Counted from the stretch's first letter, positions 752-42,359 are shown. The stretch: 64,000 nt of DNA from Convolutriloba macropyga (GCF_964194025.1 NC_134468.1:7192001-7256000), one strand, 5' to 3'. A program made the numbers and translations. The notes: a model not told the origin generated them from the sequence alone.

Positions 752-1014
752 CAACAGCACCGGTTCCCCCCACAGCTGTTCCAGACACTATAAGAGGAAC
801 ACCCAAACTAGCTCCAAACCCGGTAATAGTAGCTCCTAAGCCCAAAGTAACAGCCACTCCCCCAATCACACATGCTGACAAACTTCCCACTTGAACCTTT
901 GAACCCTTGAGTTCAACACTATCCACCAGAGTTGCAATGTCTCTCAATATTCTGATCGTGGTCCAACGACATTCCAATGAACAAGAAAGATTCGTTTTGA
1001 AGTTTCCCCGATTT
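752..1014 (-). CDS. Mirror copy of ApoL-like exon 3
   Basis: Translation matches the right-arm exon; splice sites intact. Confidence 0.8.
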
Positions 1015-5718: not shown

Positions 5719-6080
5719 TTTTTAAAATGAGGGAACCGCAGCAGCTCCTCGTACAGCACAAGGTCGATTTTGTTCAAGTCACATTCTTCTAATGCAGGCA
5801 ACACTGAAAGCGGTCTTGAATCTGCTTTTCTATCAAACGGGCAGATCACGCCTCCATGTCTAAAGCGATCAAATTTAATGGAAATTTTAACTAGTTTTAC
5901 GAATTCAAATTTATCAACAACATACCTCTGAATTAAAACTTCTAAGCAATTCAAGCAGAAAAAATGACCACAATGAAGGCACAGTAAGTTATAGGAGGCA
6001 AAGCAAATAGGGCAGACCAATTCATCAACTTGGAGTCGCTGATTCTTAGCAGTTTTATCTCGACCATATCTGTTGCCCAT
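5719..6080 (-). CDS. Mirror copy of the RING exons (6080-5926, 5859-5719)
   Basis: Reverse complement of 23680-24041 with intact frame and splice sites; KADSRP here versus KAEPRP in the right copy. Confidence 0.85.
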
Positions 6081-13708: not shown

Positions 13709-13714
13709 ATCTGC

Positions 13715-14432
13715 TTTATTCGGCTTGCGAAAGTTCATAACCCAACAGGTTATGGGCCCGGCAATTTTCTAAGTCATTAAACTAATTTATAAAACAAAAC
13801 TAGTTTGTTGTTGACAGTCACAATCCTTTTCTGCTTAGTACCTTTTCTTTTCACAACTGTTTTGCCTGCTCCAACTACGATTGATCAACAGACAGTGAAG
13901 CTGCTGACCTACACAGGAAAGGCACAGGAACTTCCAATCTGGAGCACATGATTTGTGGCAATGATGCAGACGAAGGGACTCTACAAATCACTACTGGAGA
14001 CAAAAGAGCAACCCAATGAGCCTGCTCCACTGGTCAATGGGGCAACCAATGATGAAAAGAAGAACCACAAGGTGCTGAAAGATGGATATGAGAAGGAAGT
14101 TGCAGACATCAAGGAGAAACGAAACAATATGTGATGGCATCTGGCACTGATTCTGGATGCAGCAACCCTCATGCTGATGAGAAATGACTGTATGTTAGAT
14201 GATGGCATTGGAGATGAAGCAAAGGCTTGGAAGCTTTTGCAATAGATATTTCAGAGTATGGAGACGCCGACAGTGGTGACTTTGGTGGCACAGCTTGCTC
14301 GAATGCAGGTCGAGGATGATGAGGATTTGGATAGCTTCTTCATCAGAGGACAGGAGTTGCTCAAAAGGCTACAAGAAGCAGGGGAAGCAGTCTCAGAGAC
14401 ACTCTTCAACGCCCTGGTCCTCAATGGTCTGC
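13715..14432 (+). mobile_element. Ty1/copia 5' fragment: LTR end, PBS, decayed gag
   Basis: The LTR end ..CCCAACA (13747) is followed directly by GGTTATGGGCCC (13748-13759), the copia half-tRNAiMet PBS. Gag reads AKAWKLL..LARMQVEDDEDLDSFFIRGQELLKRLQEAGEAVSETLFNALVLNGL (UBN2-like). Confidence 0.9.
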
Positions 14433-14440
14433 GAATGGTC

Positions 14441-15193
14441 CTCTGAGACTGCTTCCCCTGCTTCTTGTAGCCTTTTGAGCAACTCCTGTCCTCTGATGAA
14501 GAAGCTATCCAAATCCTCATCATCCTCGACCTGCATTCGAGCAAGCTGTGCCAACAAAGTCACCGCTGTCAGCGTCTCCATACTCTGAAATATCTATTGC
14601 AAAAGCTTCCAAGCCTTTGCTCCATCTCCAATGCCATCATCTACCATACAGTCATTTCTCATCAGCATGAGGGTTGCTGCATCCAGAGTCAGTGCCAGAT
14701 GCCATCACATATTGTTTCGTTTCTCCTTGATGTCTGCAACTTCCTTCTCATATCCATCTTTCAGCACCTTGTGGTTCTTCTTTTCATCATTGGTTGCCCC
14801 ATTGACCAGTGGAGCAGGCTCATTGGGTTGCTCTTTTGTCTCCAGTAGTGATTTGTAGAGTCCCTTCGTCTGCATCATTGCCTACAAATCATGTGCTCCA
14901 GATTGGAAATTCCTGTGCCTTTCCTGTGTAGGTCAGCAGCTTCACTGTCTGTTGATCCATCGTAGTTTGAGCAGGCAAAACAGTTGTGAAAAGAAAAGGT
15001 ACTAAGCAGAAAAGGATTGTGACTGTCAACAACAAACCAGTTTTTTTCTATAAATTAGTTTAATGACTTAGAAAATTGCCGGGCCCATAACCTGTTGGGT
15101 TATGAACTTTCGCAAGCCGAATAAAAAGCGTTTTTAACTAAGTGAAAGAATTAATTTGTCAAAATGAGAGAAAAACAAGAATGGTATTTAACA
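14441..15193 (-). mobile_element. Mirror copia fragment with a probably complete short LTR (15093-15193)
   Basis: PBS at 15081-15092; a 101-bp segment bounded by TGTT..AACA; gypsy env-like sequence resumes beyond 15193. Confidence 0.85.
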
Positions 15194-18100
15194 GTAGAAT
15201 TTAGAGATTTACCGGAGAGATCTGATTAATAGATCAAAATGGTGATTTGAATTTGTGGATGAAAAAGGACTCAAAGATCAGCCGTATATATATCCAGTCT
15301 CAGTGTGAAAAAGTCAAGATACAAAACTAATCTTAGCACCCTGATTTATAGTGGGGGTTGCAAGGGTTACCCAATATGGTTTGCTTCTACAAATCAGTCG
15401 CAAAGGGAACCATAAAGGGAAAGCATTCGCACTTTTCTAAGAATTCATTCACACTTCCGGAGATATCATAATCATTCGATACATGCTGGGAAGATTTTAC
15501 ATCAATTAATCTAACTCTAATAATAATTATCTAGAATCATCAGTTTGAACCGAGTATTGATTCACAGCACCATTTCTTGAAGATTCATTTATATCAGTAT
15601 TGGTGACTTGAATCAATTTGCCTCTGTCAGGTTAATTTGGTAAGTTAAACTTTCTAATAATACTAAGTTTAAGCCTTTAACTCGAATCAAAATTCTAACA
15701 CTTATGAACATATAAAACAGATCCTGCTCTTTAAACGTGAGTTCCTTTCTCGAAGAGCGTTGCTGATGGACGGAGAGTCTTTTTTGATATTTTAATCGTT
15801 ATTTGAATTTTCAGTCGTTGAATTTTGCATTGGAGAGTTCTAATTTCCATTTAAAATGGTTTCTTTTTTTTGAAATTTTTAGAAGTTCGAATTTCGAGGT
15901 GCCAATAACGCTTCAAAGAAACATTTCCATGGTTATTTTTGAGATTACGAGTTTTCAGTTCTGAACTTTCCTCAGAGTAAAAAACACCTGGGTTTCCGGT
16001 TGTATTTCCCTGCTGTCCACGCAAACTAATATCTTTTTTCTCTAAGACTTCTAATGCAATATCTTCAAAATTGTTTTCAGATACAGTTTTTCCGCTGATA
16101 AAAGTCATCTTGTTGTTTTCAAATATTTTTGCAGGGTACTCCTTATTAAAGTCTTTGATCGTTTGACATGTTTGCTCACCTTGATTTTCAAAAAATAGTT
16201 TGCTAAGTCGTCTTTAAAATATGTGGTTTTGATGAACACGACTTTCGAGAAACCAAGGGAATCCTTAAAATTTAATAGGCTTCCCTATAGCAGATTTCCC
16301 TAAAATGCTCCGATTTAAATTTTTGCATTATTTACCAAATTTCCAATAAGTTTTTCTGTTGTAGGTGAAAACCAATCTACGGGATCCGCATACACACCGC
16401 CTTTGCGCCGATTTTCTGCCATGAAGCTTTAACTATGCTCTTCAGCATAAATGGTTTCGCTGGCCTGTCATAATTTTTTTTCACATACTGACCTGTTGAC
16501 ATTAAAAGTCCTATCTCCAAAACCTGTTTAGTAGGCTTGAATTTTCTATGAGAAAAATTCTACATCGTCATATACGTTGTTTTTTTAAGTGCAGACACTG
16601 TATATGCCTCTTCATAAATGCAAGATTTTAGTTTTATCTCAGTTTGAACCTCAGCATATATCAAACTACCTTTTTCTATTGTTCTCGATACTCGAAGTGT
16701 GTTATCACAGTTTCTACTGTGATCTAGCGAATAGATCTTTGCTGATACGATATTGTCAAAATGATACCCGCATAACTTGATACAAGGTGAAGGACGAGCA
16801 AAAATGGCTAGCAATGCCAGATGCAAACATAGTGATACTCCATCACACGACGCTCCGGACAAATTTGCCTTTCTTTTTGATTACATTCTTTCTTTCCGAA
16901 TTTTCCTCAAACAAAAACATTATCAGTTTCCTGACTGCTAAATTGCTCTTCATCTTGCTCAGTAAAGTAATTCTTCAATTTCTCAGGAACCGATTTTAAT
17001 CGGCTGCTAGACTTTTGCCATTTTTGGTGCCTTGGGATCACTGTTAACCTTTTCTGTAGTACTTTTTGTTTCACTACTAGCTTCATGTGCCTTTTTTCTG
17101 GTTTTGGAAATTTCTTTTCTGCTGCTTTTTTTCCACTGTATTCTGTAGTTTTTGAATTAGTCTCTATTTTCTTGCCCTTTAGATGTTTCTTGCCCTTATT
17201 CTTTAGCTTCATTCTCAGACGTGTCTTTTGTTTCATTTAGTGAATCGTTAACATCCTCAGCTTTAAATTGATTTTTTGTGCTAAATTACTTTCACCGACT
17301 GTGGATCATTTTATTTCGATTATGTCATCATCGTCTGAAGTGTTGAAATGAGTAGTCTTCTCTTCCTTAACTTTTGTTTTTCGTTTCGACTTAAGCTCAA
17401 GCGTGAATGGCTGTTCTCGTGTTTTATATTTTTTCAGTCGGTCATAATGGACCTTAAGCTTTCTTCGTCTTCTTTTCGTCTACCTTGAAATTCAAATAGT
17501 TTATAAAATCAACTTTTGTGTATCGTCCTAAATAGAAGGAAGTAAATTTTCTCGTTTCTCTTTATTATTAATGTTGTGTTGAAAAGTGACACGTCTTCTC
17601 CCACTTTATAGCTAGGTCCATACTTACTACAATCATAAACGGTTTTCTGGCGTTCTTGTTCGGTATCCAAAAACTCTAGCATCAACTGGTGCGTTTACTG
17701 TGGTTTCTGACTCATTGTGAAAACATAATCACTTGGTGTTGCATATATTGCGGTCTGTGGTGTGTAATACATGCAGTTTATAGGTAGCGACAGTGGAGAG
17801 CCCAGAACCACATACGCTGGGCTGTAAATTGTTAAACTATGGATTGATGGTCGATAGGTCATCATCGCTATGGGTAGAAATTTTGGTCCGCTCAGGCGAA
17901 TATTGGCCTATAAATTTAGAGAGACGTTCTACTATTGTTAGAATTTTCTATCCATCATTGCGTACTCTTGTGGGCTTCAGGATGTTGTTGATGTCCTCTA
18001 AATTCCTCGTTCACTGCAAAGACTGCGAAATCATTTCCACAAAAACTTCGAACTTCGATCACTGTGTAGGTTGACTGGAAAGCCGAAACTCACTATCCAG

Positions 18101-23679: not shown

Positions 23680-24041
23680 ATGGGCAACAGATATGGTCGA
23701 GATAAAACTGCTAAGAATCAGCGACTCCAAGTTGATGAATTGGTCTGCCCTATTTGCTTTGCCTCCTATAACTTACTGTGCCTTCATTGTGGTCATTTTT
23801 TCTGCTTGAATTGCTTAGAAGTTTTAATTCAGAGGTATGTTGTTGATAAATTTGAATTCGTAAAACAAGTTAAAATTTCCATTAAATTTGATTGCTTTAG
23901 ACATGGAGGCGTGATCTGCCCGTTTGATAGAAAAGCAGAACCAAGACCGCTTTCAGTGTTGCCTGCATTAGAAGAATGTGACTTGAACAAAATCGACCTT
24001 GTGCTGTACGAGGAGCTGCTGCGGTTCCCTCATTTTAAAAA
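23680..24041 (+). CDS. Exons 1-2: RING-HC zinc finger (66-bp in-frame intron at 23835-23900)
   Basis: CPIC..CGHFFCLNC..CPFD motif. The intron gtatgt...tttag removes an AT-rich stretch and restores RING spacing. Donor gttagt at 24042. Confidence 0.85.
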
Positions 24042-27000
24042 GTTAGTGGCTGCTTAATGTTTGTGGCGAGTGGTTAATTTCACTCGAATTAAGTTTAAAG
24101 AAATTATTCAATGTCTTTTGCATGTCATTGCGACATCAATTGTGGAAGTAAAAGAACTTGGTCTAAGTTTTGTAATTTTGTTCAAACCAAAAAAAAACAG
24201 TCTAATTGACTCATTAGACCCAAACAAGATTCCCCAAAGAAGATATACCAGAGTATACTATAGATATACTACATATTGTTCTGAAAATATCGCGAGGCTC
24301 TGAAAAACTCCAGACAATTTAGAAGTCGCACGTGTTACCTCCATTCACAAAATAGGGGACAGAAGCAAAGTTGAAAACTATTGCTTGTTGCATTTTTGAG
24401 CATCGACAGTAAAATTCTTAAATGTGTATATGAGGACAAAGAGTCCACAAGGATGGTCTCTAGGTCTTTTGTTGTTCTGCATCTCAATGCGTGACCTTCC
24501 AAATGCTCTCTGATTTTCTCTAATCCATTCAATTTTTAGGATGAACTCAAAATCTTAGAGGTAGTGAAAAGTGTTTCTAGTTCAAGACGATCTTAATGCA
24601 CCTAAACATTGCGTAGCGATGAACAAAATGCCATTGACGAAAAGCGCATCACCAAATTTTGAGGACACAATCTCAATTTTTATGTAATGGGGCAGTATCT
24701 ATGACGTACAGTTGTCAAGGATCTGTGAATGCAAGTCGAGGATGACCTATCATCGAGTTTTCATGTTGAGGAGGGAATGAAAAAGCAAACAAATTTCTTT
24801 GTTTGAATTTTGTTTCGCACTAAGTGAAGACTGATCCAATTGGTGACTATATTAGTCGTTGATATTGTGCTTTTGTGTTGTAGGTACTGCTAAGGACAGA
24901 GCTGCAAATTAATTTTTGTTTAAAACTTGTCGAATCGTGAACCGTCTGAAAAAACTTAAATCAGAATCAGTTGTATTGAAAAATGGTATTTTTAATATAA
25001 TGTGGAGTTATTTTCGATCGAGAAGTTTTCGGTCGAAACATCTCTACGTTGCAGTTATTCTCCCGTTGCTATAATTGTAGAAATAAGTGAAGATTAACGA
25101 CTGGGACTAAAGAAAAATCTTCAGCCTAGTCACCCATCAACAACAACGCCTACGACAAGTCAAACCAACAATGAACCGAAACTGGTAGCAAGTTACTGAT
25201 AGTGTTTAGAAGCTTGCCTCCAACCACAAACAATGCGTCAAATTTGGGATCAGTGAATCAGAAGCGAACCAAGTAACAAGCTTTGTCCTGCTGGGGTTAG
25301 TCTTGGGCGCCCTGATGTTGATATTATTTAAATGATCGATCTTCTTTCCAAAGCTTCAAACTGACATCCATTCGACTAAGCGGATGGCTTCAACGTGCTC
25401 GCCAACATAACGAAGGGAACACGCTCTCTCCCTGAAGATCCAGACGTGGAGCTGCAAAATTTTGGAATTGAACCAAAATTCCAGAGTAAAGTGACATTTG
25501 AACAAGAGACAATTAGATGACTGGGCGAATGATCTTGGAGTTATCAAGTCAAAAATTTCATGTTGACTAGAAATGTCAAACAAAAAAATTGAGTTTAAAA
25601 CAAAAAAGCGTTTCCACGATCAGAAGAGGAAGAATGCCGACCTGAAAAAGCGCTGAGCTAATTAAAGGCTTATGTAGATAGGGACTTAACATGCATCAGA
25701 TGTGTGGTTTGCATCATAAACGGATCTTTCGTGTTGCTATATGTACTGAAGTACACGGTGCCTGTTTCTGATGACAGTGGAAAGTAAAACAACACTATCA
25801 ATATGCTAGATCATGCAACAACAGTATGAACTCGATGTCACCAAAGTAAGACTCTGGAAATTTCGATTCGGTCATCAAAAACTCTTGAACAACGTCAATA
25901 GTTTCTTCCGCACGACATCAAGCCAACGAAGACAATAGTGTAGGAGCTACAACTAAGCTGACCTGAAGTGTCCTCAGCATTATTAAAGCAGATTGCTCTG
26001 AATGGTATCCTGATGATTTTTGTCGTCCTCTATGAAAGTTCAGAAAAGATCAAAATTTTCACATGAAATGTTAAGAAATTTTTTACTATGTGGACATTTT
26101 CGAAACTCAAGTTCGCTCTGCTGATTAAATTTTTCGAAGGGTTTGCTCGTTTGACAGTTTGTTCAAATCCGTGATCACTGGAAGTTCTCTTAGGTTTCCT
26201 GCAGATGGCATTTTTAAATGTCATTTTGAAATGACATCGGACATTTTTAAGGACATTACTATATGAAAACATAAACTGTCTCTACCAGGCTCTACAAGCA
26301 CAGAAAGAGAAGACTACATGATTTTTTTAATTTTTTTACCTGGCCTTATTGTTCGAGAACATTCTTACGATTTCATTTCATAGGAAATTTTTCGTGCTGA
26401 ACTTCTTGATTTTTGAGTGATTTAAATTGATTTTATTTTAAAAAAACAAGAGATTAGAAAGCATGCACAAGGCAGTGACAGGCGATTTGTAATGCTTCAT
26501 TGTATTACGATGGAGGACGAGTGTGCGAACCTCTCCTTGAGCGTTTTTTTTTCACCCATAAAAAATTATCTGGGCTACAGCCACCTCTAAATTAAATGGC
26601 CCCGCGATTTAGAGAGCAAGTTCGAGAGCAATGTCGTTCGAGAGCAAATTGTCCGACGTTAGTCAGTTTTATGTTGGAAATATCGATTTCAAAAACTCGA
26701 CCCAGACTGCAAAATTTCCTCTTATGAATATGATCTCAATTGCTTCTCCAGCTCTGTAATTGATTGTAAGGTCCCTACGATTCATTATACAAAGTTTTGT
26801 ATTTGATGCTTTTCTGAACGTTTGTTTTTTGCGCCCGTTCTCAAACGCATGTTTCCAGAGTTTTGTTCAACTCGGTTTCGCTCGTCTCAACTCCGCTCTG
26901 ATCAGTAATTAATTTGTGCTGGTGGAATAACTTTTCCATCTATTGCATCATAGCTCTTCCTTGAAACATGCAGCGCTTAGAAAAGGACACAGTTGCAAGT

Positions 27001-30000
27001 TGAAAAATGGGAAAAACAGGGAAAAATTGTTTCTGAAAGCTTCCCTCAATTGATTTTGATTTAATATGTATTCGCCGCAGTTAAGTTAAACGCCTCAGTT
27101 AAAACAGACGAAAATTATTTTCAAAATCATGGGTGGCCAAAAACTGTTGGCGTGCTGAATTGGCTATGTTTTCAATCAAAGCTACAGACTTAAAGAACAT
27201 TGCGTTGAGACCTTAAAGTTAATCAGAAGCAAATCGGAAAAGAAATAGGACAAAAACAGAACTTAGGACAAAAACAGGAGACAATAAATGCTGCACTCAA
27301 TAAATCTGTTGCAAAATTGAATCAAGTTAGTGGTGTATAAGTATCTCTCCCACACACACGACCAAGCACCTACCCTTGCACACATGCACAAACACTCTCA
27401 ATTGTGTTCTCACACACGCGTGCAGAGAGACATACATGCGTTCACATGCAAACGTGCCCACGTAAACACTCATAAATTAATAATTTGCTGTGAAATAAAA
27501 AATCAGTTTTTATGGGCTTTTCAATTCTTTACGCAAAAGATAAAAATTAGCCTTATACTATAGGTTGTACAAAAAAATTCGCCTAGCATAAATTTCCTAC
27601 CCCAAAATTCGAATTGGAACAATTATGACTTAATAACTTGGAATTCAAATGTTGCGACTTGAAGTTTTGAACAAAATGAGAGGAGTGGAGCAGAATGAGT
27701 GATTCATGATTATGCTTTCCGGAGAGCGGGAATTTAATGAGTGAAAAAAAATTACGCGAAGGCATTTTCTTGTACATGCGGCTTTTTTTGTTCACTATTT
27801 TTCTTGATTAAAGGTTTGAATATGCTATGTTAATGATTTAAAAGGTTGTTTTGATAGTGTATTAATGTTTTTTTTTAGTTATTAGTCTAAGTTTTTACTT
27901 TTTTTGGTTTAATGATAATTTAGTGGTTTCTTAGGCGACTTCAGCATTTTTTTGCTACTGTTTTGTTTCACTGCATTCATTGCGGATTGAATAGACGCCT
28001 AATGCTCAAAAGAATTTTTAGGTGTCAATTTATTTCAATTTCAATGTTGTAAAACTTTCTTTTGGCTGAGAAATTAAAAAAAAACAGAAATGGAATTTTA
28101 AAATTTAGATTATGTATTTGAGCGTATGACTTTCCTATTGCTATGTGAGCATTTTTTGTGATCTTCACGTGTTTAACGAAAGATTTTCGTTTTATGTGCA
28201 CTTATATTTTACGAGGAATTAATTGAGTTTTTTTTAGTTTTGTTGGTTTTTTAGGCTACATAGTTTTAATTGCTCTTGGACGAATTTTGAAACAATTATT
28301 GTGAAAGTGTTGGTCTTTTTAATGTAAGACTTTTGCTTGAGGGATTTGACTTTACGAGTGACCTTTGCGCCCATGACTTTCGTTTTGCGTGATCTAAGTT
28401 TTTCTTCACAAATTTAAGGAGCTGATATCAAGGGGCGGCAGTTCACTACTAAAAGTGAAGGTCGATTTACAAGTGCGCCAAAATTGGTTTCAGTTTTTTC
28501 CTTAAATTTTTATGGGGGGTTAAATTGGTATATTATATATTAAACTCTAATGACGTCATTTGAAGCTCACTTTGTGATTGTTGTTACCCCCCCCCCCTGA
28601 CTGAAGGAGACTGCAATAGGTTAGAGCTCCCACCAGTAGTCCGAGAGCAATTCTCCCGACGTTAGTCGTTTGTTATTTATTGACTTTACTTTTTTTAAAA
28701 ATTTTTCTTGAGTGGTTTTAGTATGTAGTGGTTTTATCACAGGCTTGTTTTTTGGCAAAGCCGATTCTTCGGGACGTTTCTGATTTTTTTTTCTTGATTT
28801 TTCGATCGCGCTCGCTATCAGCCATATATCATACAGAGAAAAAAAACATTTAGCACGTCGTCTACGGATAAAATATTTTTCAGAAATCGGGGAAACTTCA
28901 AAACGAATCTTTCTTGTTCATTGGAATGTCGTTGGACCACGATCAGAATATTGAGAGACATTGCAACTCTGGTGGATAGTGTTGAACTCAAGGGTTCAAA
29001 GGTTCAAGTGGGAAGTTTGTCAGCATGTGTGATTGGGGGAGTGGCTGTTACTTTGGGCTTAGGAGCTACTATTACCGGGTTTGGAGCTAGTTTGGGTGTT
29101 CCTCTTATAGTGTCTGGAACAGCTGTGGGGGGAACCGGTGCTGTTGGTATGTACTGGGTTGAAATTATAGAGAAGCTTTAACTGTCAAATTTGTGATTCG
29201 AATTTCTTGTCAAAAGTTTTCGTCTGTATCCACATTTTAATGGGTTTACATACAAAGCAACCCCAAGCACAACTGCCTTGTTAACACAATGTTTTACTTT
29301 TATCGTGTAATGCCGCGTTTTATATAACGGGGGGGGGGGGGGCTTTAACTGATGTTATTGTACTGCGTCACATTATGACCAATTTTTGCTAATTGTTTTT
29401 GTGATTTTACGAAGCAAGTCACTGATATGTGAATTATCTGCAAAAGAGGCATTTATGATCTTCCGGAATGGAAATTTGTTCAGTTTTCCAATGTGAGAAC
29501 AGTTTTCTAGGTTTTCTTCTGTATGAACTCCTTTATCGCGACATTAAGTTGATTTTTGATGGGTTTGAATAGTTTTATTCATGGTTGTAGGTTCCCTTGC
29601 TACGAATATCGTCGAATACATATCACGAAAGCGAAATTTGAAACGCGTCAACATGCGTCTTCAGCTAGACAATTTTTTGTCTGAGCAGTTACTTACAATG
29701 ATGAATAGAGCGAAAACAGATCACACAATTGCGGCTATTTGGGATCTCAGTTTCCTCAACGCAATTGGCTTCGCCTGTGCAGTGCCAAATGTTGCCAAAA
29801 TTGGGGTGACCTCGTTAGCGGGTGCCAGAACAATGGCGGTTGTTGGTTCAGGTGTGGCGCGTGCATCAATCGCCGGCGTGGGAATTGTGTTTGCGGCTGC
29901 TATGATTCCGATTGACGTTGTCCAGTTGGTGCATAACACTCTAAAAGTACATTCCCAGACTCCGTCTAAGTTGGTAAAGGAGATCAGGTGCGAACAAATG

Positions 30001-33000
30001 AGCAATCTAATAAAATGGGCTAAAAAATGAAAGTTTGGTTGGATTTTCACAACGAATCCTTCGATAAAACATGCTTGTGCCATTTAAGCACTTTGAAAGC
30101 ATTGCTTAAGTCTTTAAAAAGCCTGAAATTTATTAGTGGAATCAGCATTGATTCTAAAAAAACATTTGCATTAAAAGATAGTTGCGCTAAAACATTACTG
30201 GCGGTCAGTCTGGTGAGACATCTGCCGGCTTTTGATTTTCACTTATCAAGCGAAATAGTCGATTTATCTTATAAGCCTTGAGCAAGATGAGATGAATCAG
30301 CATCATGCGAAATAACAAAAGTAGCGGCTTTACTGATTTTGATATTGTGACTTGCAAAATTTTTGCATATAAGAGGCAGTAGTATCGGACTAGTACCTCG
30401 CAAATACAGTTTCTAAGACCTAATCTCAGTAAACTTAAATTCTTTTTATTTGTTCTCGAAATAGAAGCAATTTTTGTAAAAGTGTGTGTCTTTTTATGCT
30501 GATTCGCTTGACCGTTTTTGCGCTTTTCCTCTAGAATATTTGATTTTTTGAGTGATTTTTTCACGCACTTCTTGATTTTGAGTGATTTCAATTGCTCTCA
30601 CTCCGAAATAAAGTCTGTTGTTCAAACAAAACCGATTTTTAATAAGTCGATGACAAGGCCTTGATAGCCGAGTGGTTAAGGCCTCTGGTCTACCAGGTCA
30701 AAGAGAATAAAAGTTTTCCTGATTGCCTACGCGTTTAATCTTTTTTCTTGCGCCCGTTTGATCACACTTGAAATCTCAAAACAACCATTCTATTCAGCTA
30801 TCTTGCACACTTCTTATTGTAATTTTTTGGGTCATTGTTGTGAAAAGAATATTGATCACAAATGACTTACCTCACTGAAGAATGAATTCGGAAATTTAAG
30901 TTTAGGAATCAAACTCTAATCAAAGATCAGCTCAGTGCTCCTTAATCGGCGCTCTTTGTAGTTTTGGGAAAAAATAGTTTTGGAAAAAGCAGGCTCTTGT
31001 TTTTCTTTCTTTGTTGTTAATAGCCGCCTCAGCTTCTCAGCCGGCTATTATAGCGCTCCTAATTTTTTTAACAATTCAAAGAATATTTGAATTGTATTGG
31101 ATCGCTGTCTTTTATGATCTGGACTATGAGTGAATTGGGAAAGCCATTTCTAAAAAAAAAATCAGATAAAAAAATTTAAAAAAATCAATGTCAAAATGAC
31201 GCATGTGAACAAAAAACCACTAGCGAAAAATCGAAATTTGGTTCAAACAAAAAACTAGGCCCAGACTGAACTATGAATGGATAGGGAAAATCTTTTAGAA
31301 AAAATTCCGATCTAAAAAATCGATAAAACAGAAAATCAAAGTGAAATTGTCGCATGTGAACAAAAAACCACTAACCATAAAGCGAGTTTTTGTTCAAACA
31401 CCGTTTTCTCACTCTACTGTAAAATTAGAGTGAAAATTTCACGCCAAAAGTACTCGCTTCTTCGAGTCTCAGCGGTGTCTTTGAGGACTCAATTAATTGA
31501 TGTAGTTGTATTCTTCAGTTGCTGTTGCGTTCTGTGACTTTTATACTATGTTTTTTAAAAGTTGCAGCGAGTTTTGCGATTTTTGGTTAATTTTTTCTGA
31601 TTATTTAATGTTATTAGTGAGAGGACGTTTAATAACAGGTTGCTAATGAGAAGTAGAGGAATATAGTTGACAGTTTGAGTTCATAGCAGTTGTTTTTTGA
31701 TGTTGATACTCTTTTTAAAAAATAAAGGTTGAATTTTTAATCTTGCTTGTTTTTGTTGTGCTGGTGTTATTTTTAGTCTCATTACTAACAGCTCTCATTT
31801 GCCTTTTAAAGCGGAAGTAATGATGGTCAGGTCGTAAATTAATACGATTCTTTGAATTGTATTTCAGGACTTGTCCTGTCCTGCCTTGTTTTTTCTTTCG
31901 TCGAATAAAGAAAAAATGAGAAAACGTTTTTTAAAAATGAGAAAACGTTTTTGAAAAAGAGATTTAATGCACCGCATTATGTCCAAAAGAAAAGAAGTAG
32001 TTAGCAAATTGACTAGCTGAATTAAATTTGTCACTGAATCAATTTTGGTGTATGAAGTGATTTTATTTCGTTTGGTTAGATGCGGTTGGCGGAATATCGA
32101 AACCTGAATGTTTTTGAGTAGATAATTGATCTCTTTTGTGCGCTATTGATCGTAGACTTTTTAAAACAAAATATCTGCCGCAAGCAGAGAGACCTGTTGC
32201 ATGCGAAGGTCGATGATAGACGTGTTTAATTTAAACGGCAATCTCTTATGCATTTTACAAGCTTCTTATGCGTACCCGGTAACTGATGCGTTGGAATTTA
32301 TATCTGGGACAATTTTATATTTGGAAATTTACATCGGATTTGCTCTGCTGCTTTAGCACTACACCCGCTTGTTATCTTGTTTGTCCGCAGTCTTTCGAAA
32401 GAACTGAATATCATGCTTAAGGCGCATAGTTCAGGTCTAAGCTCCTGTGAGGACTTTCATTTCAGATAGAAAATGTTGAAGCGTCCGAAGCCAGGCGAAG
32501 ATGAAGACGAACTTCTTGCCTTCCAGGAGAAGTTTCTTGCTGAGTCTAAGTCTAATCCATCTGCTACATTGGTTAAGATGGACCGACCTACATCTAAAGG
32601 GAAGTCACGTCCAGGGAAGGAGCTAAATTCCGCTGAAGCAAAGCGTCCAATCATTGTTTCTAACTTTACGATTGGAGAAGTTATTGAGCGTCAGTCTGAA
32701 ATTAGTGCAATTGTAGATGTTCAGGACACTCAGTGTGAAATGGGGTTCCCGGTTGTAGAGAAATTGACTAATTATAACAAGTCATGTGATAATGAGGTAC
32801 CTCAAAACGTCAAGAAAAAGAAGAAAGGAACAAGTATTTTCGCCCAAAAAATGGCTGCTGATAGAATGAAAACTGACAAAAGTGCTAACAATGTACCTAC
32901 ACAACAGCCGATTTGTACAAATTTAACGGGATTCGAAGGTCACTCGACGCAAACCGGGCCAGTAATGATTGAGAGACATTTTCAAAGTAATGCGGAAGAG

Positions 33001-36000
33001 AATGTGGTAGATTTCAAATCAATTCATGAAGAAAATATGACAAAATTGAAGTCTATGAGCGACGAAGAAATCTTAGCCGAGCAACGTCAACTGATTTCTC
33101 GATTGGACCCGTCGACTATTGGATTTCTGAAGAATCGATCGAAAGTTAAGCAACCTGTTATTACTAACGAAAACAGTCATAAAGTAAGCAGTTCTACTAA
33201 ACTCGCAGAAACCTCAGGACCTTTCGGGAATCCGAATGACAAGTCATTGAGCAGTGAGGGTCAACATATTTGGGACTCGGATCTTCCAGAACCAGATCCG
33301 TCGAAGACTTATTCGATTAGATTTGATTTCCAGGGTCTAATTGTAACTAACAACAATTTACCAGTGCATCTAGGGTTACATCATCATGGCGAAGAACAAG
33401 AAGTACCTGGTTATACAGTCGATGAATTATTCATGCTCAGTAAAAGCTCGAACGCTCAACAAAAGCTGATGGCTGTGAAAACTCTGGCTTTGATATGCAA
33501 AAATGCAAAGCTGGGATGTTTTGTGGGTTTAGAAATTAATGTATTCCAGCATTTAATTGAAAAGGGCCTGCCGATTTTGTTTCGACTAGTTTTAGACGAA
33601 CAGAATATAGCTTCAATCTGTGTTGCTGTTCAGGCTTTTAGTTTGATGTTACATAGTTCTCATACTGAAAATGTTCTCGAAGTTTCAACATTGTGTTCGA
33701 CAACCCGCCTTTGTTTTGTGTCAATGAAGCCTTTCAGTGTGAAGAAAATTGATAGTAAGAAACCAGAAGATGTGATGAAAATTGACCTATTGAAAGGTCT
33801 AAACCAGACTAACATTATGATTCGGTTGCGCTACATAATCGAAGTTATTAAACCGCCGCCAGAAGTTTGTTCAGACATTTTAAAAATTCTGCAATCGTTC
33901 TCCCGACATTCTATGTCGCTAGCGTATGACGTTTTCAAATGTCCTCGTCTGTTGGACTTGATTGTTAACAATTATTTGGACCTTCAAAACCCGTTTTCAG
34001 AACTAACTATTAATTGCATGAAGTTGTTATTGGTCATTATATCGAACGGTGTTAATATGGCGAAGACCATTGTCTTGTTTCCCAATTTTGAGAAGTTTGT
34101 TCTTTTCGGTTTAACTGAAGATTTAGCAGTGTCGGAGAGTAATGAAACATTGAATTATAAGTTAATTGTTATCTCTTTGGTTTATTACTTAGTTGAAGAA
34201 TTACTTCAATGTCAATTGTTCACTGACCAATTAATTTCTGTTTTGCATTCTGTTATGATGCGAACAGTGAAACTTCAAACAGTTGAAATCGAAAAATGCT
34301 CGAGTAATGAACTCAAATTTTTAGTCGCTCATTTCAGCTTTTGTGCAACTATATACGAAAAGCTGTCAAGTCTAGCCGATAACACAGTGTTGCATGTATT
34401 CTTACATGATTGTCGTGAGATGACTTTGGTCCTTAGTCTGAAGTGGTTGAATACGATTGTAGTTTCGGAACCACATTTGATAAATGGGGTACGCAGTTCT
34501 GTATTTGCAGTCATGCTGAAAATCTTGAATGCAGGTCCAAGAAATCAAATATCTAAAGACTTGAATGAAAATTTTGAACAGCTTTTTCAAATGGTTGTCA
34601 GGTATTTGAAGAGTGGAGAAATAAGCAAGTTATTTTCGCGTTTAATTGTGGAATTCCCTTACAAGTTCGTAATTTCAAACTGTTTGCTGGAATGTTATTA
34701 CGACCTTGACATCACAACAACGTCGTTTTACACTTTCGAGTGCATTTCGTCCGTTTTTCAACTTGCGTCCAAGTTTCAAGATCCTAATCAGAACCATAAA
34801 GAAGAACTTGTTAGACTTGCGGATAATTTTCTAAAATATTTTACAAAATTCGAACCTCCGTTAGTGATAGAAAAAGATTTGAGCGACAGCTTTGGTTACT
34901 CAAATTTCATAGTTGCTGTAAAATCGGTTTTCGATGTTCTGATTTATCTCAAAAACCTTATCAATCAAGGCTTGTTATCATCTAAAACATCCCAAAGTTT
35001 AACACTTGTTTGCCTGAAATTAATATCAGAATGTCCCTCCGGGTATCCAGATTTACTTCGAAGAATGTTTAGAGAGCTATTATTTGATCAATCATTTCAT
35101 AACTACGTAACCCTAACTGAAAAGTTATCAGAATTGAATATCGATAGTTCAGTTCCTGAGAGCGAAAATCGTGAAGCTGATGTCATCAATGAAGTTTTCG
35201 TATGCTTTGAATCGTCGTTCCCGGCTATTTTGAAAAAACAGAAAACTGTCAATTTTGCTGAGATTGAAAGCTTGCTAGTTGAACCTTCAAGTAATGGCCT
35301 AGAGTTACCAAAAGATTGGTTGTTTTATCCGATTTTGAGCTTAATTGATCAAACCAAGCACAAAAACGGTGATGTTGATATTGAGTACGCTAATGTGAAA
35401 ACAGTCCGAGTATGTTTGAAGTTTCTGTGTACTCTAAGCTTTGAGCATTTATCAACATTTTTGACGCCTAATCTCATATTCGACCGCTTGATGTGCGTGT
35501 TCATGTTGACAAGTGCAATTTTCATGGACAACGATATCAAGACTTCTATTCGAAAACTTTTACTGAGTCTAATTGAGTGTACTAAGTTAACTTTGAAACA
35601 CGATTCTACGACAGACGGAGCTTTCTACGAGCATTACGTGTCTCTGCTGGAACATTTTGAGGCTGAATCGTTTGGAGACCAACTTTTTGCGAATTTTGTG
35701 CTGTTGCCTATGTGTACCCGATTTGACCCGAAGTTGCGAAGAGCAGTTTGGACAGAATTCAGCAATGTTCTCAAGGTTCATATGTTCTGAATTTTGGAAT
35801 TGTGTTTTTTTTCCCGTACGTAGCTACATAATATACGAAAGGTTTTTTTTATCGATGTAACTTTTTGAAGTTCTCATTTGGATATGTGATCCTCCCTGGA
35901 TCGAATGATCATTGATACTTTTTCTTTGAGGCAGGTTGGTGCTGAAATTAGCAGTTTTGAAATTTTAGTGGTCCTCGTGGTCTTTTGGAGCTGTTTAGTG

Positions 36001-39000
36001 GTGGATTTTACTTTTTCGAATAAATTTTTTTTCAAATTTATTTATTAATTGCTATTGCTCTCGAACGGAGTTTGAAGCAGTTATTGTAAACGTGTGTGTA
36101 TTTTTTATGCGAAGTTTTTACTTGACTGTTTTGTTCTAGAACATTTTTTTTTGTCTCCAGTGACACTTTTTAACACTTGACTTTTTGATTTTTGCGTGAT
36201 CGGAGTTGCTCTCATTCCAAAATTAAGTCTGTTGCTATTATAAAGGCGATAGAAAAGCCGGGAGCATAACATCTGGCAGGTTGGTGGTTTCGAACCCCTA
36301 CCGTGTCTTTTTTCTGCACTCATTAAGTTATCTAGGGTTCACATCCCTGAAAATCTTCGAGTTGTAATTTAAGTAACTCTTTCTTTAATAGCAAGCATTT
36401 GGTTAATAGAAACAAATAAAAATTTAAATTTATTTAACCAAATTTTAGCAACGTAATAAAAAACAACGTAATTTGAATTCACATCTTTCTCTTTTTGTTC
36501 TGACCCCACTTGTGGGGGAAGGAACTATATACTCAACTGGGTTTTTTTTGTTCAGTCAATTTTGGTCGATTGATATATTCATCGTAGAGAAATGTGAGTG
36601 GTATCATTAAAAAGCTCGTCCAGCGTAAAATTTGACATTAAAACGATTTTTCTGAATTTCGTATTTTTCGAGTGGGCAAGGATTGAAGTTTTTGTGTGAA
36701 CAAGTGATATTTGGTATGATTTCGTTCACTTTTAGAGTAATTTTTCTTCAAATTATGATCTTTTCTTGAAAATTTTTCATTCAAAATTACATTTCACGCC
36801 ACAAAGGGAATCAATTTCGTATTCCTAATACACGAAAGGTGATAAAAGATTAGTTCTGATCTCCTAGGGAAGTTTACTATAAAAAAATTCGAATTTTATT
36901 TGAGAGCTGTTTTTTTTAGAAAACTTCATATTTTTCAGGTCTCCTAGAGACTGGTCACTTTTCATATCGATGTTTGGTTATTGATAAACTTGATTTAGAG
37001 TAAAATTACGCCTAATGAACAAAAAAACGTTTTCAAGGAATCGCACATGTTCTTCATGGCTTCGACTCTGAGCTTTTGTAATTTTTAATGAAATTTTGAT
37101 TTTCTTTGAGGCTTTACTGAATTTTTGCAGCTCTTTGGCATAAAATTGTTGACAAGAATTGCATTGGATTTCGTAATGGGCATTAGTGAAGCTATTCAGT
37201 GCTCTGATTGGACAGCTAATGGCTTACAACTTATTTTTGTAAACGAAGGCAGCCGCAGCACTGACAGGATCCCCTTCTTTTCTACTGCAACCAAATCTAA
37301 TGTTTAGCGTTTTTATCTTCTAACTATTGACTTTATGAATTCGATGCTACAAGATTTCAAAAACAATTTTAAAAATTTTAATATTTTCGTATTTTTGAAT
37401 CCTTTTGAAATTTCATCACATTATCCTAATTTGGATAGCTTCCGTTGGTTTAGGGAAGACGTTCAATGGATCATAGATAAAGTTTTCACAGAAAAGCTTG
37501 TAGTTTAAATGGCTTCGACACTTTCTTCTCGCACTTTTTTTTACTGATTTTTTGTCTTTTGCCTGTATTTGTTGTTGTTTTCATAGTCATAAGACTTATT
37601 GTGATATCTTATTGATTACTCATGCATGACAAACATCTTTTTCCTTTTATCGAGTCATGACTGAGCGTGTCTATTGACTTCTGTTGAAAGCTATTGAACT
37701 TATTGTCTGTTCAGACTTTAAATATAATTTCTCAAAAATTTTTTTGAACATTAACCAATTTTAAACTTATTTTCATGATTTGTGAGAATTTCTCAGTAAT
37801 GACCAGAACCCCTTCAATTCTTCCTACAGCAATCTAATTTATTTTGGTTGAAGTTTTTTTCTAACTCCTGGTTTTATGGCTTCTATGCCACAAGATTTCA
37901 AAAAAAATTTAAAATTTTGGATTTTTTGTATATTTGGTTCCTGTTGAAATCTTATCACATTATCCTAATATTGATAGCTCCCATTGGTTTTGAGAAGACG
38001 TTCAATGGAGTATAGAGAAAATTTTCAGATAAAAGGATATGGTTTAAATGGCTGCGACACTTTCTTCTCGCACTTTTCTGGTGAATTATTGGTTTCTGTA
38101 TTTGTTTTGCAGTCATAAGACTTATTGTGATATCTTATTGATTACCCATGCATGGCAAACATCTTTGTCATTCTACTTAGTCATGATTTAGCGTAATTGT
38201 TGACTTCTGTTGAGAGCTATTGAAATTAATGGCTGTTAAGACTTCGTAAACTTATCTTCGTGAACTGTACGAACGTCTAAGTAATTACCGGAACTCCTTC
38301 TTTCCTAATCTAACAAAAATAATCTTATTGGCGACTTTATCTTCTAACTATTGGTTTGACAAAATCGATGCGCTAGTTTCCATAAATTTTTTGGACATTT
38401 GGAAAATTATCGGATTTGTTTTTGGTTCATCCCATTATTGGATTTGAAATCTTATCACATTATCATATTAGTGTTAATTCCAATTGGCCTAAAAAGGAGG
38501 TCAATGGATCATAGATAAAGTTTTCAAAGGAAAGCTTATGGTTTAAATGGCGTCGACACTTTCTTCTTGCACTTTTCTACCGAAATTTTGGTTTTTGCCT
38601 GTATTTTTTGTTGTCTCCTTAGTCAATGACTTATTGTAATCTCTTAGCGTATCGATGACTTGTCTATGACAAAAATCCTTGTCGTCCCGTCGAAGTATAA
38701 CTCTTATACTCCTATCGAGCGCTTTTATTGCCTTTCGCTGAAAGCAATTGAGTTTAATGGCGTTGATACTACCGATTTTCTCAGAATTTTCGTGGTTTTA
38801 ATGTATTTGTTCATATTTATTGATTTTTTGAAGTTATATTGAAAAAAGAATCTCATGCTGTTAAAAAGTTAATGGATGATGGAAAAGTCATTACCGAAAA
38901 GTTATATTTTAATGGCTTCGACACTTTTCTCGCGCAATTTTTTTTTTTTAATTATTGGTTTTTGCCTTTTTTTATCTTTAGGTAGGCGCAAAATGCTGAC

Positions 39001-42000
39001 CGGTCTCAAAAACTTCTAATTGAGTATTCAAGGATTGATTTTACCCAAAGCAGTCATTTTTTAGCGAATAGTCTCAAAGTTTATGATATAATACTTTTTC
39101 AATGATTTAAACTTTTCTGTTTGTTTTTTTTTCGTCAACTTGTAGCTTATTCTCATCATTGTGAGGTCTCATTCAATTTCTTGCATTCGAAAAATTTAAA
39201 TGTCCAGTGATATCATGTCGTAACTGATGTTTTGTTTGTGGACCATTTGCGTTTAAATAAGTTTTAGTGGTGTACTTGTGTTTCTTTTTCTCTTCTTTTA
39301 GCACATTCGCGTATTAACAGATCCCAATGATTTTCGAATGTGGCTTAAATGCACTTATTTAATCTTTCAGTATAATTTTAGCTGCATTAGTATGAATGAA
39401 AATGGAAGGAAGAATTCATAGTATTCAGATAATAGCTAATGATTTTAATGGCCTCATTAATTTGTGTTTTCGAAAATTGTTAATTTTGTTGAGTTTTTCT
39501 GCGTCTGTAGTGCCCTTGTTTTCTAGTTTTCTGCGTTCCTATGGCCTAATCTAACCAACGACAGGTCCTATTGGTTTCATAATGAGTGTTTAGTAGATTT
39601 CTTAAGAATTATTTCGTTAAAAGCTAATGATTTTTATGACTTTAGAAATTATTTCGTTTAAAAAATGTTGATTGATTTTTCAATTTCGGCTATTATTTGC
39701 TTTTGTCAACAATGATACCTAGTCTCATTAAGGAAAATTGCCATCTGCTGCATAGTATGAACAAAGTAAATTTGTGCAGCTAAGGTTTTATACGATTGCT
39801 TTTTGGCGTTGTTACTAGGTGCATTCAAATTTAGATATTTAGTTTTTGCCGTGAAATTTTTGCTTTTGCTTCTTTTGTTGTTTGTTTGTTTTTCTCGTAG
39901 TTTTTTCATTGAAAGATCTTGTCAGCGCTGTAATGAGGTATGGCATTATGTAGTTCAATAAGTAGTTAGGTTTTTCAACGGTTTTTTAAACTAAAATATC
40001 TATTTTTATTATCTCTTCATTTGGTTGACAATTAAGTCAAAAGTGTTGATGAGCTCGGGTCGGAACATCATGTGCGAACGCTCATTAACGAGCATCCTTG
40101 CTGGATTCTCTTGGACTCGCAGTCTGCGAAAATGATGTTTTCTGCTGCTCTATAAATTGGAAAAGAAAAGCTTCCTCCATTCCATCTTTATGTCTCTGGA
40201 TTTCAAATTTAACCTTAAATTTATTTTCATCGAATATAATTGCATTATGAATTGTCGCAATATCGTGGCATATGGTGTTATTGAAAAAAAAACATAACCC
40301 ACGAACGTGGGGCTATGCTACGGTAGTAGCTAGCTTTGTAACGCTAGCTTCAGCTCAAGCGGGTGAAGTGTATAACACGGGATGTTTTTTGGGGGCTGTT
40401 TTGCGGTGTAGGGGCTAATACGTGTACTGAATTCGTTAAACGTTTCGAGACATCTCAGCAATTGATGCAAGATTTTTTGTTTCTTTAGTTTTATGCCTAT
40501 TTTTTTTCCATTAGTTGGCATAGTTTTTAATCAAAATTTTGATACTTTATCTACAAAGCTATTGCAACTATATTTCTAGCAATTATTGTTTAAGTGGAAA
40601 TAAGTTATAAAAATAACATGAAAGATATTTCCTTGGCGTGGTTATAATTTCTTTTTAAAGCTGTCAACCATTTTCACACTAGTTCTCTTGCAGAACGCAA
40701 AAATAAATTTCCTCCGCAAAAATAATTAATTAGAAGTGGTTTTGTATCACGAATTTGAGAAACGTATATACGTTCAATATGCGCTTTTGAAAAATGTTTA
40801 CTGACCTATATTTTTTGCTGAACAGGTTCTGAGGATGGATGTTGATCAACTACTATTCCCCTTCGATTGGCTGGTCTCTCCCCTCGAGACTGAAGGTGAA
40901 ATTCTCCGAAAACAAAACAGCTGTCTTCAAGGCGATATTTTGTCCAAATGTCCCATTCTTCAAGCGGTTGCTCTGCGTAATGTTACCCAACGTCATGAAT
41001 TTGTCTCAGAAGATACTGTTGAATAAATTGCTTATGTTATGGTTTCTAATCTTCATTTTGCATTTTAAAATAAAAAGTTAAATCCTTGGATTTGGTCTTT
41101 CAAACGCTGTTGTGGATAGTTCCAGTGTATTAGAAGTTGTAGAAAATGGTCTAAAGGGCGGTAGAGCTCATCGTGTTTGGAATTGTTGGTATTTTCTCGA
41201 ACAATAAGAAAAAGGAAAAGAGTCTGGGAAGTATGGCCCCTCTTGATCTGCCTCCTGCCTACCAGTGCAGTGTTCTCTCCCCTCCCCTGACGAAGTGATC
41301 TTAATCGCCTTAACTTAAGCTATCTACTACAAAAGCCAAAGCCCTCTTCCTCCCCAGTCGCTTGAAAGCAATTCTTCCGACGTTAGTTGGGTGTTCTAAA
41401 TTGCTCTCATTCAGAATTTTAAAGCAGCTAAACTCTAAGTGGCGGCAGTTTACTACCAAAATTCAAATGAAAATCCCTAAAAATGTTTTATTTTTTAAAC
41501 CTGAAATCTTACGAGTTATATAGAACGAAATTGTTTGAGAAGGCTTATATTTGCCGCTTATCTGCAAGCGAGTAACCCTCTGTTTTTTGAGCTGTTAATT
41601 TAAAAATAAAAATAGATTGCTCATTTGAACAATGTTTACTACAGAAACCTTGCAGAATCATTGGAGGTACAACTGAAGCTATTTTATATGCAACTGGGTC
41701 TATTTCACAGAATTCATTGCTACACAAAATCGTCCTTGCCTTCACTCGAACAAGACTCACTTTTCTTAAATTCCGAACATGAAAGATCATCGGAGCTGGA
41801 GCGTCAAGACAGCATGGAAAGAGATCACCTGTTAATTGGGAAAGAGTTTGATGCGGCTTCATTGCAAACACCTGCTAATCAAAACGAAAATAGTAAAGTT
41901 AATGTTGAAAATGAATCAGAACAGAGCAGTTCAGAGGTTGTCAACTCGGATGACACGTTTGTGTTTGTCCAGGGCGAGGACGTTGCCGAGTACGAATCGA

Positions 42001-42359
42001 GTGGATCTATGATTGCGGATGACTCGCAATGCGATACTTCGACTTCTTCTTGGATTTACGACTCGAATGGTGGTGTGTTGAAACCTATGTGGGTTTATGC
42101 GTGCATTGATCCAATGTTTTCTGATCAGTACCACTTGATCAGGGATCTGGGCGATGTTGACGGGGCAGTTCTGACGTATGACAAGGTCAAATCCTGGGGT
42201 CGAATTATTTTTCAGGGAATGGGCGAAGATCCGCCCGGTGATGTGATTGATGTAGTGCATAATGAATGGTATGCTTTGCACCAGCCAGAAATGGGAAGTG
42301 TTAATGTCGAGAAAGATATGTCAACAAGTGTCATTTTGAGTGACTCGTTCTCTTGCTAA
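23680..42359 (+). CDS. Predicted 5-exon gene: RING-HC finger + apolipoprotein L-like domain + acidic linker + C-terminal GxDPP domain (556 aa)
   Basis: Exons 23680-23834, 23901-24041, 28884-29146, 29591-29987 and 41645-42359 total 1671 nt (557 codons including stop). All junctions are GT..AG and phase compatible (2,2,1,2). The long joins (exon 2-3 and exon 4-5) are inferred. Confidence 0.7.
24190..25000 (+). mobile_element. Highly decayed CR1/L2-group LINE reverse transcriptase fragment in intron 2
   Basis: Pieces read LDPNK, ARVTSIHKIGDRSKVENY..SKIL, PQGWSLGLLLFCISMRDLP, QDDLNA and KDL*MQVEDDLS..HV: canonical LINE RT motifs in the correct order. Confidence 0.75.
28884..29146 (+). CDS. Exon 3: ApoL-like domain, first part
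   Basis: Acceptor ttttcag and donor gtatgt. TIRILRDIATLVD..VGSLSACVIGG..TGFGASLGVPLIVSGTAVGGTG resembles the ApoL Gly-rich hydrophobic hairpin. Confidence 0.8.
29591..29987 (+). CDS. Exon 4: ApoL-like domain, second part
   Basis: Acceptor ttgtag, with a phase-1 join to exon 3 (G-SLATNIVE). IAGVGIVFAAAMIPIDVVQLV..VHSQTPSKLVKEIR matches the ApoL C-terminal hairpin pattern. Donor gtgcga at 29988. Confidence 0.82.
30440..30697 (+). mobile_element. Truncated copy of the same repeat, ending in a tRNA-like A-box half
   Basis: ggccttgatagccgagtggttaaggc at 30657. The upstream AT-rich block resembles 49120-49290, 36055-36215 and 28265-28400. Confidence 0.55.
32473..41026 (+). CDS. RPAP1: RNA polymerase II-associated protein 1; exons 32473-35775 and 40826-41026 (1167 aa)
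   Basis: N-terminus MLKRPKPGEDEDELLAFQEKFL; RPAP1_N motif IHEENMTKLKSMSDEEILAEQRQLISRLDP; RPAP1_C motif RFDFQG..LHHHGEEQEVPGYT. The C-terminal FEAESFGDQLFANFVLLP..RRAVW is joined in phase 0 (aag/gt at 35776, aacag/gtt at 40826) to VLRM..SPLETE..CPILQAVA. Confidence 0.95.
36495..40105 (+). mobile_element. Non-autonomous Helentron/DINE-1-like element, copy A (in the RPAP1 intron)
   Basis: 5' end ttgttctgacccc with a hairpin; conserved core of about 150 bp; four internal repeat units (aatggcttcgacactttcttctcgcac near 37510, 38050, 38550, 38910); subterminal IR gggtcggaaca at 40057; terminal hairpin gctc-attaac-gagc. Confidence 0.7.
41645..42359 (+). CDS. Terminal exon, probably exon 5 of the RING-ApoL gene (ApoL C-terminal helix, acidic linker, GxDPP domain)
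   Basis: Open frame of 715 nt after acceptor tactacag, phase 2. It begins (R)NLAESLEVQLK, continuing SKLVKEIR as in the ApoL leucine-zipper-like helix (cf. human APOL1 SETAEELKKVAQELEEKL). Confidence 0.72.

Follow-up and report, generated by a model that had tools for sequence, protein, structure and literature searches.

Can four open reading frames (ORFs) that look unrelated when read separately be parts of one animal gene, and what might be the role of a protein that joins a RING finger to an apolipoprotein L (ApoL)-type domain? The question is raised by positions 23,680 to 42,359 of a 64,000-nucleotide stretch of the genome of Convolutriloba macropyga (GCF_964194025.1 NC_134468.1:7192001-7256000; hereafter the window, with about 36% G+C and the appearance of intron-rich animal DNA), for which a preliminary description made from the sequence alone had proposed a RING E3 ubiquitin ligase fused to an ApoL domain. 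We present evidence that the locus is probably a five-exon animal gene coding for an intracellular protein of 556 residues, which combines a RING finger, an ApoL-type domain and a C-terminal alpha/beta module and would act as a membrane-inserted E3 ligase. This reading is carried by the spliced reading frame and by a family of database proteins in which the same three parts follow one another within a single ORF.

A spliced reading frame of five exons

We read all junctions in the sequence and spliced the exons by script. Five exons with GT-AG sites and fitting phases yield a coding sequence of 1671 nucleotides (nt), i.e., 556 codons and a stop codon (42357-42359), with no internal stops. The parts of the gene are as follows:

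23680..23834, plus strand: exon 1a, with the start codon (MGNRYG...) and the first six RING zinc ligands
23835..23900, plus strand: mini-intron of 66 nt, in frame (GTATGT...TTTAG), between RING ligands 6 and 7
23901..24041, plus strand: exon 1b, with the last RING ligand pair, Arg62, and a linker with the family motif LPxxEE
28884..29146, plus strand: exon 2, with the first ApoL-type helix (conserved R-x-T-I-x-x-L-R), together with the first of the glycine-rich hydrophobic hairpins
29591..29987, plus strand: exon 3, whose product is the second half of the ApoL-type domain, with the second of its hydrophobic segments
29988..41644, plus strand: last intron of 11,657 nt, which hosts a two-exon RPAP1 gene
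41645..41732, plus strand: start of the last exon, with the C-terminal amphipathic helix of the ApoL-type domain followed by the first beta-strand of the module (FHRIHC)
41733..42074, plus strand: acidic and serine-rich disordered linker, which splits a beta-hairpin of the C-terminal module
42075..42359, plus strand: core of the C-terminal module, with a short tail ahead of the stop codon

The initiator ATG at 23680 has A at -3 and G at +4, and is preceded by an in-frame TAA four codons upstream. Exon 1b is joined to exon 2 by the donor AA/GTTAGT (24041/24042) and the acceptor TTTTCAG/A (28883/28884), exon 2 to exon 3 by G/GTATGT (29146/29147) and TTGTAG/G (29590/29591), and exon 3 to the last exon by AG/GTGCGA (29987/29988) and CTACAG/A (41644/41645). 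The preliminary description had joined four ORFs into one stop-free frame of 556 residues through phase-matched GT-AG sites, and we reproduced its junctions exactly; its four ORFs correspond to our five exons, the first ORF containing the in-frame mini-intron, which had already been allowed for in its count (556 rather than 578 residues). Removal of this mini-intron is accompanied by a family RING profile score of 41.5 bits, as against 24.2 bits when it is kept, and none of the aligned homologues has an insert at this position. If exon 1b is left unspliced, the frame ends at the stop codon at 24055-24057. Exon 2, in turn, is preceded by a stop at 28795, after which no in-frame ATG occurs ahead of the exon, and hence it needs an upstream coding exon. 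Taken with the gap-free alignment of the family over the junctions and the same exon order in a related species, sequence comparison places the spliced frame far beyond chance.

The three domains and their homologues

A HMMER search with exon 3 against 1.84 G proteins returned 22 matches, mostly proteins of about 400 residues with an N-terminal RING finger and an ApoL domain scoring at or near the Pfam gathering score over almost the whole model. We built RING, ApoL and C-terminal sub-profiles from ten homologues and scored them against the spliced protein: they match in the order RING (residues 13-77), ApoL (112-332) and module (468-531). The same order is seen within a single ORF in at least 14 database clusters of about 400 residues, including P0002 (a contiguous intronless ORF of 1275 nt on a 922-kb contig), P0013 (on a 1.8-kb contig) and a protein of the jellyfish Sanderia malayensis (EukProt EP00794 P004845), in which family genes are numbered consecutively. 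Thus, the proposal that a RING, an ApoL domain and a C-terminal domain share one gene is supported by their recurrence as single ORFs elsewhere. The family shows further variation: P0020 (454 residues) has a ubiquitin domain at its end (PF00240, 40.3 bits), P0004 (530 residues) carries about five tandem C-terminal modules behind a partial ApoL domain, and database members of 270-310 residues lack the RING. As to the suggestion that the protein may be N-myristoylated, its start, MGNRYG..., does present a myristoylation-type motif, but an MG start with such a motif is found in only 4 of the 17 RING-bearing members and is no family trait.

The RING finger has its zinc ligands at C23, C26, C37, H39, C42, C45, C58 and D61 of the spliced protein (C3HC3D), with the spacing C-x2-C-x10-C-x-H-x2-C-x2-C-x12-C-x2-D, which fits a RING-HC cross-brace. 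The last ligand is aspartate in place of cysteine, as in several other family members, and the final pair reads C58-P-F-D61; we presume that this CPFD resembles the corresponding pair of the TRIM23 and Roquin RINGs. With all eight ligands in place and the curated Pfam threshold for a RING model passed, the preliminary assignment of this domain holds: PF13445 (zf-RING_UBOX) reaches 26.7 bits (cut-off 25.2), over the first half only, as the mini-intron splits the searched ORF, and PF00097 reaches 20.5 against a cut-off of 21 on the same split ORF. In the spliced form, the family RING-plus-linker profile covers residues 13-77 with 41.5 bits, including the post-RING motif. By inspection, Ile25 and Pro59 occupy the usual positions of contact with the ubiquitin-conjugating enzyme (E2) and Arg62 the linchpin position. 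Searched against PDB sequences, the family profile recovered RING chains only, among them the RING of TRIM23 (5vzv); the best structural and sequence neighbors of the family RING are RNF4, TRIM5/31/2, AMFR, SH3RF1 and TRIM23. A PDB sequence search with exon 1b alone gave no match, and a search for relatives of the 125-residue RING ORF returned only the window's own protein.

The ApoL homology claimed in the preliminary description is borne out at the level of profiles. Over residues 112-332 of the spliced protein, the family ApoL profile reaches 186.8 bits, without gaps across either the exon 2/3 or the exon 3/last-exon junction. An hhalign comparison of the family alignment, with the spliced protein as master, against the fish protein P0050 (Pfam ApoL 125.6 bits) gave a probability of 96.2% and an E-value of 2.7e-9 over 209 columns, aligning residues 119-329 to 288-512 of P0050, whose ApoL domain spans 268-516; with the family alignment by itself, the probability was 95%. 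Both the alignment to the fish ApoL and the family profile thus cross the last junction to about residue 330. Sequence similarity is low, at 21% over the aligned columns. At least eight family members lie above the Pfam ApoL threshold (PF05461, cut-off 25.9 bits), matched over nearly the whole model: P0039 (40.8), P0022 (39.0), P0012 (31.4), P0034 (30.2), P0040 (29.9), P0011 (29.3), P0007 (27.5) and P0003 (26.4 bits). Moreover, the nearest clusters among the language-model neighbors of exon 3 in the Atlas are ApoL (0.93). Hydropathy analysis marks two glycine-rich hydrophobic segments (residues 138-180 and 232-304), and an amphipathic helix at about residues 307-335, predicted with a local distance difference test score (pLDDT) above 90, closes the domain.

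The end of the last exon aligns to the C-terminal 90 or so residues of the homologues of about 400 residues, and the family C-terminal profile scores 18.3 bits at residues 468-531. This unit had been described as an extra domain, a view that needs to be revised: it is a module of the whole family, conserved in at least 14 members, and what is special to this protein and to that of its nearest relative is the inserted linker. The module has a beta-alpha-alpha-beta-alpha topology and the conserved signature W-x-Y ... G-x-G-x-x-x-P ... E-W-Y. In the AlphaFold2 model of the homologue P0003 it is a small alpha/beta unit (residues 333-421, pLDDT 95-98); in that of the window's last exon, a helix (2-16) and a strand (20-28) are followed by a further strand (144-154), two helices, a strand and a helix, all with pLDDT above 90. 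The linker of about 115 residues that interrupts the first hairpin of the module is rich in S, E and D, with pLDDT below 50; it is kept, though poorly conserved, in the nearest relative and absent from the homologues of about 400 residues.

Searches of Pfam, PADLOC and NCBIfam gave no significant match to the module, only sub-threshold hits to WING-49 and PDC-M21C on P0004. Fold searches returned nothing at E<=0.001 in the PDB with Foldseek, a best Z of 3.4 with VIA-align and template modeling (TM) scores of at most 0.26 in the ESM Atlas; an Atlas feature search gave no usable match, and a word-index search with the P0004 module repeats recovered P0004 alone. When compared with AlphaFold clusters by Foldseek, the core (42075-42281) resembles the last 55-60 residues of two proteins annotated as 'Caspase family p20 domain-containing' (A0A1X7TB77 and A0A1X7UQP3; root-mean-square deviation of about 2 Å, Foldseek probabilities of 1.0 and 0.99) and also matches several uncharacterized proteins of about 90 residues, which we take, from their accessions, to be bacterial. 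The module is a small conserved domain without a name or known fold, and probably a protein-binding or regulatory unit.

One gene or several

Contigs of a related species (ENA ERZ25074608) present copies of the ApoL, linker and module parts at three places:

L006, 9019-12237: one copy
L007, 4095-7280: one copy
L007, 9058-12243: one copy, in tandem with the preceding one at a spacing of 5 kb

Counterparts of exon 2 (62-66% identity), exon 3 (54%) and the last exon lie there in the same order and end at the same residues. The last intron is only about 1.15 kb long and holds no RPAP1, while the linker and module are present. As a side observation, fragments of a major facilitator superfamily transporter lie nearby on the opposite strand. 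In the window, by contrast with this short and empty intron, the last intron of the RING-ApoL gene hosts a complete RPAP1 on the same strand:

32473-35775, plus strand: RPAP1 exon 1, with Pfam RPAP1_N, RPAP1_C and TPR_RPAP1
40826-41026, plus strand: RPAP1 exon 2, 66 codons, extending the TPR_RPAP1 profile from position 154
41022-41027, plus strand: poly(A) signal AATAAA, overlapping the RPAP1 stop codon

This RPAP1 is not intronless, as its second exon resumes the profile exactly where the first stops, and the 1.18-Gb assembly contains no other intact RPAP1. The locus clearly exemplifies the nesting of an entire gene, on the same strand, within an intron whose counterpart in a relative is short and empty. 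A further AATAAA is found at 30009-30014, 22 nt past the exon 3 donor and ahead of the read-through stop at 30028-30030; this signal would allow a short isoform of 333 residues without the closing helix and module.

The locus further belongs to a large inverted duplication, which spans window positions 1-45107 and extends outward to window position -15558, with arms of at least 30 kb, a center near 14,950 and a spacer at approximately 13708-16281. Identity between the arms is 97-99% from the center until about 800 nt beyond exon 3 and falls to 84-93% in their outer parts, which suggests an older duplication with inner arms homogenized, e.g., by gene conversion. We considered an assembly artifact as the cause of the duplication and rejected it, as the arms differ by 1-16% and their outer parts bear different lesions. 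The other arm carries a second copy of the gene, copy A:

5721..6080, minus strand: RING exon
about 726-1022, minus strand: exon 2
1-316, minus strand: exon 3, running off the start of the window
G000:C1:7177716-7178430, outside the window: last exon

Exons 1-3 of copy A differ from those of the studied copy at three residues. In its last exon, codon 378 is a premature stop and the frame shifts near residues 467-473, while a TAA interrupts the RPAP1 of this arm (G000:C1:7184602-7187898).

Several observations weigh against a single gene for a three-part protein. In the relative, the 19 kb upstream and the sequence between the tandem copies yielded no RING exon to tblastn, a regular expression or the family RING profile; as judged from this nearest relative, with its 54-66% identical ApoL exons, RING-less forms of the gene exist. 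The loss of the last exon from copy A means that either the module is dispensable or the copy is dying. The last intron must be transcribed through the whole of RPAP1 and its AATAAA. Four public runs covering 23995-29994 show even depth over the introns and no spliced joints, i.e., they are genomic DNA; the public runs matching the locus come from one study, and none has the locus, or even the housekeeping gene RPAP1, as RNA. With regard to the ApoL-type domain, the exon pieces searched singly did not match Pfam ApoL at E<=1; as they are only fragments of the domain, we do not hold this result against the assignment. A Foldseek search of the whole homologue model against AlphaFold Swiss-Prot gave RING matches only and no APOL, and VIA-align gave generic helical bundles (Z<=8.2), the hairpin regions being modeled at low confidence; the ApoL assignment thus stands on sequence profiles and not on structure. 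On a separate note, many genomic contigs from all four runs break or enter unrelated sequence at two places in intron 1 (26633-26669 and 28280-28568), and short skip joints are concentrated at 28401-28546, a pattern suggestive of dispersed repeats or of a short tandem stretch that varies.

These points can be read as favoring two genes, namely one for a RING-only protein of 125 residues that retains the mini-intron and ends at 24057, and another for a RING-less protein with the ApoL-type domain and module, with the phase match between them either coincidental or left over from an ancestral fusion. The tandem copies in the relative without a RING exon within 19 kb, the RING-less database members of 270-310 residues, and the public runs, which cover the RING and ApoL exons as genomic DNA and not as RNA, are all compatible with such a split. 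Yet exon 2 has an acceptor but no start codon of its own after the upstream stop, and the donor that closes the RING exon is strong and of fitting phase. The RING itself is of the family-specific type including the post-RING linker (41.5 bits versus 26.7 for the best generic model), and the order and spacing of the domains match those of the single-ORF homologues. Furthermore, the ten largest ORFs (50-128 residues) in the 4.8-kb intron 1 and directly behind exon 3 contain no Pfam domain, and many of the short database proteins start within the hydrophobic hairpin and are therefore probably ORF fragments of split genes. Hence, we consider two genes improbable, and splicing that joins the RING exons to those of the ApoL-type domain is likely in this animal.

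The remaining alternatives concern the 3' end and the survival of the locus. Since the arrival of RPAP1, the AATAAA just past exon 3 might stop transcripts, such that the gene would now encode a RING-ApoL protein of 333 residues and its last exon would be an orphan that has yet to decay. This would accord with the read-through stop at 30030, the same-strand poly(A) signal of the nested RPAP1, the broken last exon of copy A behind exons 1-3 that are 99% identical, and the end of high arm identity about 800 nt beyond exon 3. Against it, the last exon remains fully open over 238 codons in an AT-rich genome, neither the donor at 29987 nor the acceptor at 41645 is damaged, AATAAA is common by chance at 36% G+C, and copy A gained its stop and frameshift at about 92% DNA identity, which fits selection on the studied copy. 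We therefore regard an end after exon 3 as quite improbable. The join of exon 3 to the last exon and its module, in contrast, is very likely, because the homologues run through this junction and the relative has the same exons about 1.15 kb apart. It is conceivable, but highly improbable, that neither copy is expressed and both are left over from a recent inverted duplication, the open frame surviving by chance: the palindrome with its 97-99% identical inner arms, the visibly broken copy and the genomic nature of the public runs would fit this, but in the studied copy five exons, eight splice signals and all RING ligands are intact, and the nested RPAP1, as the genome's only intact one, implies that the arm is at least partly under selection.

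Proposed function and relation to known systems

Under the preferred reading of one gene for a RING-ApoL-module protein, we infer membrane insertion, E3 activity and a role in defense or cell death from the sequence of its parts. The RING would recruit a ubiquitin-loaded E2, and the ApoL-type domain, with its two glycine-rich hairpins and closing amphipathic helix, would insert into a membrane and possibly permeabilize it, the latter only if it keeps the activity of the APOL family. As there is no signal peptide, the RING should face the cytosol, where the protein would ubiquitinate itself or neighboring proteins at the membrane into which it inserts. Alternatively, the gene model may be right while the ApoL-type domain is merely an anchor, making this an ordinary membrane-tethered RING E3 of quality control or trafficking with no pore or immune role. 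Hydrophobic hairpins serve as anchors in many RING E3s, and our fold searches gave no evidence for pore formation. Nevertheless, the ApoL homology spans the whole domain of about 210 residues, well beyond the hydrophobic stretches; members of the family are clustered, as seen in the consecutive Sanderia gene numbers and the 5-kb tandem copies on L007, which we would take to be more typical of immune or conflict genes; and one member (P0020) ends in a ubiquitin domain. An anchor alone thus seems unlikely. The close-lying copies, in at least two species, and the ubiquitin-tailed P0020 fit a fast-evolving role in defense or cell death, without proving it.

More speculatively, one might picture the RING-ApoL-module proteins as undescribed death or defense effectors of early animals, in which the ApoL-type domain would damage the membrane of the cell or of a pathogen, the RING would mark the site or the protein itself with ubiquitin, and the module would serve as a homotypic adaptor that brings the effector to a sensor; we deem this rather unlikely as a whole. 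The adaptor idea, held just as tentatively, draws on analogy: the predicted shape of the module is seen again at the C-terminal end of two caspase-domain proteins and in small proteins that appear to be bacterial, which brings to mind the effector-associated domains in the conflict systems of bacteria and basal metazoans. In mammalian cell-autonomous immunity, attack on membranes (APOL3) and coating with ubiquitin (RING-type ligases) form separate arms. If the proposed function is true, membrane attack and ubiquitin tagging would be physically coupled in an ApoL-RING protein, and ApoL-based defense or cell death would extend beyond vertebrates, to at least a jellyfish lineage.

Among known systems, the ClyA-type pore formers (ClyA, XaxAB, YaxB, Hbl) superpose with the model of the ApoL region of P0003 as long helical bundles (Z of 5-7), but these scores are within the stated noise range of the tool for helical bundles and offer no evidence of kinship. 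The TRIM- and SH3RF-type RING-HC E3s share the spacing of the RING, whereas the B-box, coiled coil and other elements of TRIM proteins are absent here. The vertebrate APOL1-6 and APOLD1 proteins (PF05461) are homologous at the profile level over the helical domain of about 210 residues, with a common order of amphipathic helix, glycine-rich hairpin, second hydrophobic segment and closing amphipathic helix. The intracellular APOLs (APOL2/3/6) likewise lack a signal peptide. They differ from the RING-ApoL protein in that only the latter has an N-terminal RING and a C-terminal alpha/beta module; to our knowledge, no vertebrate APOL has either. Full-text literature searches gave no description of the RING-ApoL architecture. 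The closest counterparts are the unnamed RING-ApoL proteins (P0002, P0003, P0005, P0013, P0034-P0040), which have the same three parts in the same order, the same module and the same RING subtype, with the last ligand often aspartate followed by LPxPxxF. These are 31-37% identical to the studied protein in the exon 3 region and mostly of about 400 residues without the linker of about 115 residues; P0002 is intronless, in contrast to the four introns of the studied gene, one of which hosts RPAP1. Thus, the parts belong to known families while their combination appears to be undescribed, and the novelty lies in the recognition of this family rather than in a new sequence.

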